Assembly (NCBI RefSeq): GCF_033153115.1
Contig: NW_026889811.1
Coordinates: forward strand, 3,906,001-3,970,000
Origin: Saccostrea echinata
Taxonomy: Eukaryota
DNA length: 64,000 nt
Reading direction: 5' to 3'
The notes below the pieces were generated by a model that was not told the origin of the DNA, did not search any database, and saw only the letters and a list, made by a program, of their open reading frames with translations. Made by a program: the position numbers and the translations under genes. Within the stretch, counting starts at the first letter, position 1; each line of letters begins with the position of its first letter. Positions 10,001-13,000 of the stretch are shown one piece after another.

Positions 10001-13000
10001 ATCTTATTACATTAATAGCAGGTTTTTATGCCGCCGCCATAAAATGGCTGGGGCACATAGTGTTACCCTGTTTCGTTATTCTGTCAACTCAAATTTGACA
10101 TGTGGATATATCATAGGAATACACAGGTCAAGTTCGAATTTGGTCATGGTCCAATAATTTTTGACAGAGTTATCCCTCTTGAACTTAGGAAAAAATAAGA
10201 AATTTTCAGTTTCCACTTTCTAACTTTTGTAGGGATGTATATATAAGGTTGAAATTGCATATGCAGGTATACTACCAGAAAATACAGGTCAAGTTCGAAT
10301 TTGGTAATGGTCCGATGATTTTTGAGAGAGTTATCCCTCGTGAAATTAGGGAAAAATAAGAAATTTTCAGTTTCCTCTCTCTAATGTTTGTAGGGATGTA
10401 TGTATAAGGTTGAAATTGCATATGCAGGAATATTACCAGAAAATACAGGTCAAGTTCGAATTTGGTCATGGTACGATGATTTTTGACAGAGTTGTTTCTC
10501 TTGAACTTAGAAAAAATAAGAAGAAATTTTCAGTCTCCACTCTGTAACTTTTGTAGGGATGTATGTATGAGGTTGAAATTGTATATGCTGGTATTTTACC
10601 AGAAAATATGGTTCATGTTTGAATACAAATTTAAAACTAAATATTTTGGCTGCTTGTGGGGGCATTCATGGCATTATCGACACATCTAATTGTACCAAGT
10701 GTTGTTATAGCCAGTCACTAAGGACAGCAAAGATTGCTTCATCATTCATTATTTTCAAGTTCTGAATAATAAAAAATAGTAATATCTTTTATCTCAATAT
10801 TGATGTTTTGATATAACAAACACTTTTAACTGTATGTACATGGATTTAAGGATTTTGGATTTTATGATGTAAAAAATGTCATCTATTGATGTATCTATCC
10901 AAGATTTTTTTTGTGGACGGTGGGGTGGGTGGTTGTAGTCATGTATATAACTCTGTATGGATTTCATTGGTCATCTGAAAGGAATCAAGTGATGTTATGC
11001 TCAACAAGAGAAAAGAAGTATTCTCTCTTTCTGTAATAACATGAATGTTTAATGAATTAGGGTTATAATAATAGCCAATATTGATGACAGAATCATTCCC
11101 TGTAGTATGATGCCCTGTAGTATGTAGGTTATTGAATACTTGACACTGTTGATGAGACTTTTGTTACATCATCATATCCCCCGGAGAAGCAGGTGCTAGA
11201 CTTAGGTCAGGGAGATGTTAATGCTCCTATATTGTTATTATCGATCTGTGTAGCATATAGATATTTTCTTGTTTAATAATTCTGTTTCATCTTCTTAGAT
11301 GAACAGAAAGTAAAACTTGGAAGTATATTGTTGAAACATTTTACGTGTTCATTAGGAAAGTTATTAAGGGAAAACGGACTTATTTTTTTCCTGATGATTT
11401 GTGTTCTTCAGTATATACCTTGTTGTTGACAGGCCAGAGACAGAGGAGACCTCTACTCCATTGTTCTCCAAATTTACAGAGAAAAAGTCACTTCAGTTCA
11501 ACAAGAGATCACATACAGTCAAGTCGATATTCAGGAAGACAGCTACCAAAGGTAATACAAAGATATCTACCAAATGTAATCATCCAGTCAAGTCTATATT
11601 CAGGAAGACACGTATCAAAGGTAATACAAAGACACCTACCAAAGGTAATACAAAGTCCAATATAAATCATAAAGACACCTACAAAAGATAATGCAAAGTC
11701 CAATAATAGTCATCAAGACACCTACCAAAGGTAATACAAAGACACCTACCAAAGGTAATACAAAGTCCAATATAAATCATCAAGTATATAACTATTAAAT
11801 GTGTATTCTGGTACATGCTTATATACCTTTAGTGGCCATTTTTGCACAAGACATATTCCTTAAATGGAAATTATTTACACCAATTTTCATTTAATTAATT
11901 AAGTTATATATTTTGCTGTGAAAAAAATTGTCATAAAAGTTATAAACAGGTACAACAGTGTAAAATGTCTGATGATAGTATATCTACAGAATTTGTCTAC
12001 TGAAATAATTTACATTTAAAGGTTGTGCAAGGGTTTAATTATTAAGTAGTAATTATCAATGGTAAAAAAGGAAAATATTTCCATATTGTAGTAAGTTGCT
12101 GTGATGGTAGTTTAAATATATACATAATTATGATAAGATCATACTTAAGTTACACAGGTGAAGATATTTATTTAAATGGAGTTTTTATTGATTTTTGTAA
12201 ATTGTTTTTTTTTTTTATTGTAGATAGAAAATTAGCTTTGGTTGCAGAAGTACCTTGTGGCTTTTTAATTATCAGTTTAGAAATCACCAAAATAATATAT
12301 TTTTAGATCTGACATGCATGTTATTGATTATTTTATTGACACTTGATTTGATAATTAAATCATTCAATCAGAATGGTGACAGATTGCAGGTTAATTATGG
12401 TCTCTAGCTGAGCAGGTTGAGCAACAACTCTTTGTTTACAAACAAAGTCACATGACCTAGCACATGCCTAGAGATTAATGTCACCTGCCCAAGCTATTAG
12501 TGATTGCATCATCACAGTTTGTCATTGGTTGGCTAGGAATCCACAACATAATTATACTGCTAATGTGGAAAATTTGAAAAATCATTTTCTTTGTTAAGGC
12601 ATTTCTTGGTTCTTTTTGTCCAGTGCAGTCCATAGAGCATACAAGGTGTACTTTCAATTTAAGAGAGTAAAGAGTTTCAGGTGTAAAGCATAAAAGTGCA
12701 AATGAACAGCTATGTCTTTGGAAAATGTTTTTTCGAAACTCAATGTGAAAATGAAAGAGAACTTTGTGTTGAGGTTACATGATGAATATGATGATGAATT
12801 TGTAGTAATTGATGTGAAAACTATCAATGGGAAATTCTGTTACAGGGGTAAGTTGTTCAAATAACATTATTATTAACAGTGAAGCTATTTTTCTAGTTAT
12901 TGCATTGCAAAGAAATTGATTGGTTAAAATTCATATTTTTCTAAAGAAATGCACAATATTTGTTCTTTTTAATAATTTGATAATTTTGATTTTTTTGCTT

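Follow-up and report, generated by a model that had tools for sequence, protein, structure and literature searches.

Related Rab Regulators and ATG8-Binding Motifs

In mammals, the N-terminal parts of Rabex-5 (RABGEF1), a guanine nucleotide exchange factor (GEF) for Rab5, bind ubiquitin, act as an E3 ubiquitin ligase for Ras and help to target the protein to endosomes; the rest comprises an autoinhibited GEF core and a Rabaptin-5-binding helix. We analyzed a 64,000-nucleotide (nt) stretch of the Saccostrea echinata genome (RefSeq assembly GCF_033153115.1, contig NW_026889811.1, positions 3,906,001 to 3,970,000 of the forward strand), called the window below, in whose positions all coordinates are given. 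Its plus strand carries a clear orthologue of Rabex-5/RABGEF1, a member of the same family. Isoform X1 of this gene has the A20 finger. Isoform X2 keeps the DUF5601 helical bundle, the VPS9 domain and the long C-terminal helix, but differs from the described protein in a 45-residue leader with an acidic-F-V-V-I motif, which replaces the region of the A20 finger and the motif interacting with ubiquitin (MIU) together with the following linker. The leader is encoded within 12536-12847 (coding part 12712-12847), which is very probably a true alternative first exon, presumably transcribed from a start site of its own inside intron 2.

RABGEF1 recruitment in Parkin-mediated mitophagy reportedly depends on the ubiquitin-binding N-terminus, the part that X2 is without. 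Rabex-5 is tied by that work to selective autophagy upstream of Rab5 and Rab7 (PMC5780041). Another parallel is offered by TBC1D5 and TBC1D25/OATL1, in which a short ATG8-binding motif, the LC3-interacting region (LIR), places a Rab regulator on autophagic membranes (LIRs listed in PMC5538626). These are GTPase-activating proteins with constitutive LIRs, whereas the bivalve candidate motif lies on a Rab5 GEF and would be switched in by an alternative promoter.

The motif itself resembles the LIRs of the ULK complex. Validated LIRs in Table 1 of Rogov et al. 2017 (PMC5538626) include TDDFVMV (ULK1), TDDFVLV (ULK2) and HDDFVMIDF (ATG13), and all three proteins are given as GABARAP-selective interactors in Table 2 of the same paper. 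The bivalve motif has in common with them an acidic-acidic-F-V-x-[IV] core and an acidic residue that follows the core, and both oyster D-D-E-F-V-V-I-D-V and clam S-D-D-F-V-L-I-D are near copies. Of the positions shown, only the first and the last set the clam version apart from ULK2 T-D-D-F-V-L-V (PMC5538626). On the other hand, the last core position in bivalves is I, not V, and a turn-like I-N-G block that follows the bivalve core is absent from the ULK/ATG13 LIRs.

Structure of the Rabex-5 Gene and Its Alternative First Exon

By splice-site inspection the gene has six coding exons in its canonical form, to which the alternative first exon is added. The features are as follows, with P0070 and P0068 denoting the database proteins of isoforms X1 and X2.

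6989-7182, plus strand: canonical coding exon 1, ATG at 7001, A20 zinc finger (Pfam zf-A20, E = 2.9e-14); residues 1-60 of P0070, acceptor and donor checked
11433-11551, plus strand: canonical exon 2, basic linker (...KSIFRK), ends in phase 1 with G; residues 62-100 of P0070
12536-12711, plus strand: likely 5' untranslated region (UTR) of the alternative first exon; unspliced low-depth contigs from RNA runs start at 12536, 12599, 12628 and 12671
12712-12847, plus strand: 45 codons and 1 nt of coding sequence in the alternative first exon; residues 1-45 of XP_061166617.1 (P0068)
12790-12813, plus strand: codons of the LIR-like core D-D-E-F-V-V-I-D, conserved and matched by the extended LIR (xLIR) regular expression
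12848-12853, plus strand: splice donor GTAAGT; the RefSeq model joins ...CYR to D-SPLQ
16497-16757, plus strand: shared exon 3, start of the helical bundle (Pfam DUF5601) and acceptor for both routes; residues 47-132 of P0068 and 102-187 of P0070; joint 16757>17340 in RNA contigs
17340-17564, plus strand: shared exon 4, DUF5601 continues; joints in RNA contigs
17863-18119, plus strand: shared exon 5, VPS9 core (Pfam VPS9, E = 2.9e-28); joints in RNA contigs
18306-18785, plus strand: shared last coding exon with the end of VPS9, the long helix and the stop codon; splice inspection, exact substring of P0068 and P0070

The alternative exon was initially proposed from the letters of the window. 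Its ATG (12712-12714) opens 45 codons and is preceded by an in-frame TGA at 12703-12705 on the plus strand. A single extra G (12847) follows the last codon and precedes the GTAAGT donor, so that the exon ends in phase 1. This is the phase needed by the exon 3 acceptor, ttccag/AT at 16497, where G and AT form an Asp codon. Since canonical exon 2 and the alternative exon both end in phase 1 with G, both make this Asp with exon 3. The start codon, upstream stop, 45-codon open reading frame (ORF), donor and phase fit to 16497 given by the sequence-only reading were exact in every detail. An out-of-frame ATG at 12702 opens a 27-codon upstream ORF (12702-12782) overlapping the main ATG, which is not above chance expectation.

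Taken alone, the sequence was only suggestive evidence for the exon. An ATG-initiated ORF of at least 45 codons ending at a phase-1 GTRAGT occurred in 7% of simulated 9.3-kb introns of matched length and composition (p ~0.07). That the exon is real was settled by database records and RNA assemblies. XP_061166617.1 (P0068, 452 amino acids (aa), [quoted passage not shown]) equals the alternative exon followed by exons 3 to 6; it starts with exactly the 45 residues of the candidate and continues D-SPLQESTG.... The A20-containing form is isoform X1 (P0070, 507 aa). In a scripted comparison, the translation of every Rabex-5 exon in the window was an exact substring of P0068 or P0070.

Canonical exons 1 and 2 are both skipped in X2. 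X2 thereby loses the A20 finger, the region equivalent to the mammalian MIU and the basic exon 2 linker, but retains an intact DUF5601 helical bundle, VPS9 domain and C-terminal helix. P0068 carries precomputed PF18151 and PF02204 matches and no zf-A20, and is spliced at 16497, in agreement with the predicted A20-less isoform that keeps the helical bundle and VPS9. The DUF5601 match reached E = 1.4e-12 on a single exon. In the AlphaFold2 model, residues 335-385 of X2 form a long helix in the position of the coiled coil of mammalian Rabex-5.

The same prediction had treated the isoform as hidden and undescribed, which did not hold, as RefSeq and UniProt list isoform X2 for S. echinata and four other oysters. 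Outside S. echinata, records of this isoform exist for S. cucullata (XP_062583051.1), Crassostrea angulata (XP_052716787.1), C. virginica (XP_022343683.2) and Magallana gigas (XP_065936366.1, XP_034317894.1, XP_011413684.1 and UniProt A0A8W8MTZ9). The oldest accession encountered was XP_011413684.1, "PREDICTED ... isoform X2 [Crassostrea gigas]". Consequently, the alternative exon is not new. The 45-residue leaders of four oysters are identical at 34-43 of 45 positions without insertions or deletions (indels), and D-D-E-F-V-V-I-D-V is invariant among them.

These records were reached through the shared part of the protein. Searches took the exons of the spliced model one at a time, and comparisons at full length were made with database proteins called by identifier. 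Exon 3, compared with a representative library, led to a full-length scallop-like Rabex-5 (P0003), and a word search with P0003 limited to the helical-bundle and VPS9 part returned the oyster isoforms lacking the A20 domain. With the 45-aa peptide as query, Pfam, PDB sequences and the ESM Atlas yielded no usable result. Word searches, run first on the bare peptide and then on residues 1-45 of P0068, returned a blank or only the query; because the second missed the obvious Magallana homologue, blanks from a word search on so short a stretch mean nothing.

Several other arrangements were considered and rejected. A direct splice from the A20 exon to 16497 was ruled out by its phases (2 versus 1), the join running into a stop, and this failure led the search to exon 2 at 11433-11551. 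A reading of the alternative exon as an internal exon fed from the A20 exon was also dropped, as the in-frame TGA at 12703 precedes it and the sole nearby AG is in the wrong frame. An origin from a repeat or transposon was discarded since the 923-Mb genome contains the alternative-exon region in a single copy.

The last 25-45 nt of exons 1 and 2, with their GT donors, are tandemly repeated inside the following introns (7162-7260 and 11515-11650), for example ...gaacagaaaactaggtgagg twice and ...caaaggtaataca three times. These copies may be decoy donors or slippage products.

Transcript Evidence

Logan contigs of 1.7-2.2 kb encode a complete 447-aa Magallana/Crassostrea form in which ...KVCYR is joined to DSPIQ (proteins P0178, from 20 contigs, P0180, P0182, P0188, P0189 and P0191). 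As contigs of this length hold the whole multi-exon coding sequence, we infer that they are spliced mRNA and that the splice is used in these relatives. In the same Magallana/Crassostrea material, the 447-aa isoform was assembled about as often as the 507-aa form.

Sixteen runs matched part of 12433-12853. Four of them, RNA-type runs of S. echinata and close relatives from three studies, were aligned to 12350-18349 at the level of contigs only. All four runs have spliced Rabex-5 contigs and therefore contain RNA. Joints were seen between the last four coding exons, and the main contigs begin at 16495 with an AG before exon 3 that fits the end of exon 2. Each run also yielded a short unspliced contig over the alternative exon: X5 at 12536-12688, X3 at 12599-12789, X1 at 12628-12839 and X6 at 12671-12839. 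The depth of the contigs in 12536-12839 was 2.6-4.5, compared with 18-217 for the main mRNA. The remaining unique part of the intron was essentially bare, with one small contig at 16150-16349 in two runs, and apart from a trace in X5 no contig covered 12350-12535 in the four runs. This pattern fits a weakly expressed exon with a 5' UTR starting at or before 12536, contigs being unable to show true 5' ends.

Conservation Beyond Oysters

Related alternative N-termini are joined at the same exon 3 boundary in Ruditapes X2, Mactra, Dreissena X2 and the Logan transcript P0087. In Ruditapes, the boundary reads ...FRKTPTKE/SVPE in X1 and ...MYKILKE/SVPE in X2. The heterodont leaders are as follows.

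Ruditapes X2: MDPSDEFVLIDSINGTLCTME...
Mactra antiquata: MEPSDDFVLIDSINGTVYTME...
Logan transcript P0087, grouping with heterodonts by sequence: MEPSDEFVLIEDINGMVFTME...
Dreissena X2: MDIGYYVIERENWCFIE

MAFFT aligned these leaders with a 16-residue block of the oyster leader, and BLASTP of the oyster against the Ruditapes peptide gave E = 2e-5 with 10 of 16 residues identical. The core they share can be written as D-[DE]-F-V-[VL]-I-[DE] and, after a gap of 0-2 residues, [IV]-N-G-x-hydrophobic-[CYF]. Their position at one boundary and the shared block argue that the alternative exon was present before oysters and heterodont clams diverged in the early Palaeozoic, and the exon is probably ancient in bivalves. 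By comparison of these sequences, the retention of both D-[DE]-F-V-[VL]-I-[DE] and the I-N-G block in oysters and heterodonts shows that the motif is under selection. The lack of conservation that would have counted against the exon in the sequence-only reading was thus not seen: D-D-E-F-V-V-I-D is invariant in four oysters, and heterodonts share the exon boundary.

Among annotated or assembled proteins, the clusters of gastropods, cephalopods, one nemertean and one priapulid yielded no related alternative N-terminus. Pinctada and Solemya were represented by single canonical models only, with their clusters outside the look-ups.

LIR-Like Motif and Proposed Role of Isoform X2

The core D-D-E-F-V-V-I-D agrees with the canonical LIR consensus, [W/F/Y]-x-x-[L/I/V] with acidic residues before it (PMC5538626). 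The acidic-[FWY]xx[LIV] motif of ULK1/ATG13 type proposed for this exon is therefore a textbook LIR consensus, close to the LIRs of ULK2 and ATG13, and it is conserved: the core, invariant in the four oysters, aligns with D-[DE]-F-V-L-I-[DE] in heterodonts. All eight bivalve sequences kept the I and an aromatic residue at the first core position (Y in Dreissena, F in the others), and seven kept the acidic flanks. In seven of the eight species this was the sole xLIR match of the alternative isoform, Dreissena having Y-Y-V-I at the site, and xLIR matches occurred at 0.7 per 1000 aa across the 269 proteins compared. The F-to-Y change in Dreissena is compatible with a LIR. AlphaFold2, run with a 56-sequence alignment, gave a predicted local distance difference test score (pLDDT) of about 90 in the GEF core and below 50 at residues 11-15, 19-32 and 34-59; the low values suggest that this leader segment is not confidently folded, as would be expected of a linear motif.

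Transcripts starting in intron 2 are very probably spliced from the donor after 12847 to 16497, giving the 452-aa X2. In X2, forty-five residues take the place of the A20 finger, the region equivalent to the mammalian MIU and the exon 2 linker, leaving the GEF core unchanged. Under the proposed mechanism, X2 would be a Rab5 GEF that no longer reads ubiquitin and is placed or regulated through the conserved motif. The best single candidate for the role of this motif, held tentatively, is binding of ATG8/GABARAP as a ULK/ATG13-type LIR. On the strength of the sequence match, such binding with a targeting role is plausible for the predicted LIR, though on balance doubtful. It is also possible, but far from assured, that promoter choice switches between ubiquitin-guided and ATG8-guided activation of Rab5, and that this switch has been kept since before oysters and heterodonts diverged.

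In the literature searched, no description was found of a Rabex-5 isoform that lacks the A20 finger or bears a LIR. The exon and the isoform are already known at the database level, and the LIR assignment is a reasonable new hypothesis. What was absent from the searched literature is a near copy of the ULK2/ATG13 LIR on a Rab5 activator, conserved across distant bivalve orders and replacing a ubiquitin-binding module. If the motif binds ATG8, X2 would be a natural example of a Rab GEF re-addressed by promoter choice and would directly link Rab5 activation to autophagic membranes. In addition, the recognition of a real 45-codon exon from raw sequence alone provides a calibration point.

Alternative Explanations

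Several observations count against a motif-guided isoform X2 in S. echinata. Of the RNA signals expected from the sequence-only reading, 5' ends near 12450-12700 would be compatible with the contig starts at 12536-12671, which cannot show true 5' ends, and the 12847-16497 junction was not among the joints listed for the S. echinata-type runs, which have 129 more beyond those listed; the evidence for splicing in S. echinata thus comes from the RefSeq model and from relatives. The RNA runs were picked for matching this stretch, and coverage of the exon is therefore partly due to selection. In X1 and X6, two runs with different organism labels, the contigs stop at the same position, 12839, which leaves 8 nt to the donor. 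No related leader was found in Mytilus, scallops, Tegillarca or unionids by cluster look-ups of annotated and assembled proteins, in which absence proves little. As for the motif, AlphaFold placed low-confidence strands at residues 17-24, 27-34, 36-38 and 41-43, the last three drawn as a hairpin with N-G at the turn. The I-N-G-x-hydrophobic block is as conserved as the core and has no counterpart in known LIRs, and Dreissena keeps only Y-Y-V-I-E with weaker acidic flanks.

It could well be, then, that the exon is real and that its motif is something other than a LIR: a beta-hairpin strand docking on a partner or on the GEF itself, or an acidic dileucine, SUMO-interaction-like or clathrin-box-like motif. 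The conservation of the I-N-G-x-hydrophobic block, equal to that of the F-V-x-I core, hints at a small beta-hairpin or another partner, and the strands at 27-34, 36-38 and 41-43 agree with a hairpin, although their pLDDT is below 50. By inspection, heterodont D-E-F-V-L-I fits the dileucine pattern [DE]xxxL[LI]; oysters, however, have V-I instead of L-I. In terms of ELM patterns, a core with only three aliphatic residues fails the usual SUMO-interaction motif, and a clathrin box needs L first. Against all of these stands the much closer match to the validated ULK2 and ATG13 LIRs.

It is unlikely that X2 acts mainly through loss of function, as a GEF freed of the ubiquitin-binding, Ras-ubiquitinating N-terminus with a leader that has no specific binding role. 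Such an isoform would have parallels: Mytilus (which has a different short leader, MKTIVFFKE...), Ruditapes X3, Sepia and Limulus X2 all show A20-less isoforms with unrelated short N-termini. However, a functionless leader would not retain a 16-residue block between oysters and heterodont clams, nor would it remain free of indels across four oyster species.

An arrangement in which the ENFV...CYR part is used as an internal cassette between exons 2 and 3, so that a single protein would have both the motif and the A20 finger, is improbable. The M. gigas UniProt entry A0A8W8MS11 (P0073, 545 aa) does include ENFV...CYR after exon 2, and AG 12756-12757 in the window gives the right phase. However, the sequence before this AG is purine-rich without a pyrimidine tract, the acceptor looks weak, and the contigs from 12599 and 12628 run unbroken across it. 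The cassette is moreover represented by a single UniRef model and no contigs on record, compared with many contigs for the 447-aa form.

A chance intronic ORF beside a chance GTAAGT, with contigs from pre-mRNA or genomic carry-over, would agree with the sequence-only p of ~0.07 and the unlisted 12847>16497 joint of S. echinata, but is refuted by identity with a RefSeq isoform, an open frame kept in five oysters, Magallana assemblies joining the exon to exon 3 and related exons in clams.

Promoter-Proximal Motifs

Two motifs adjoin each other upstream of the alternative exon, whose regulation by FOXO and TFEB under starvation had been proposed on their account.

12433-12439, plus strand: TGTTTAC, which like GTCACATGAC precedes the start of the 5'-most RNA contig by about 80-100 nt
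12447-12456, plus strand: GTCACATGAC, containing an E-box/M-box-like 9-mer

TCACATGAC is found again at 5189-5197, followed about 40 nt later by a GTAAGT where the non-coding first exon may end. The adjacent upstream motifs and the repeat near the main promoter were thus present as described. The FOXO heptamer TGTTTAC was observed 20 times in the window against 15.5 expected and, being at chance frequency, carries no information. TCACATGAC, which contains an M-box-type CATGTG E-box with T flanks of the kind bound by MiT/TFE factors, occurred four times against 0.61 expected in the window, two of the four at the two Rabex-5 5' regions; this enrichment is a lead, not evidence. A perfect ATTGCATCA, the ATF4/CARE core, was noted at 12503-12511, some 25 nt before the 5'-most RNA contig begins. 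Its count in the window (3 versus 1.2 expected) was not significant. Overall, we found no support for FOXO/TFEB control or starvation induction of the alternative exon.

Other Features of the Window

An internally repeated element occupies 13857-15540, inside the Rabex-5 intron, and includes a 228-aa stop-free stretch (14331-15014) that had no Pfam match. In each of the four runs, RNA contigs over this element reached depths of hundreds to thousands and showed many rearranged joints, which marks it as an abundant transcribed repeat family.

On the minus strand, a retroelement spans 19846-28300. Its 1367-aa open frame (22932-27032) encodes, in this order, a SCAN-like gag, an integrase and a reverse transcriptase, and the element is flanked by identical stretches at 19846-20145 and 27399-27698.

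An assembly gap or masked stretch of 132 N lies at 48450-48581. Just before it, on the plus strand, an intronless ORF of 509 aa, encoding a B-box and a coiled coil of TRIM type, extends over 46622-48148, and broken pieces related to it are found about 12 kb downstream (59054-59846, plus strand). Exons of a glycoside hydrolase family 10 (GH10, xylanase-like) gene are located at 56511-58517 on the plus strand and also at 50431-50826 and 61559-61867; the presence of an upstream exon at two places suggests a tandem pair of GH10 genes.

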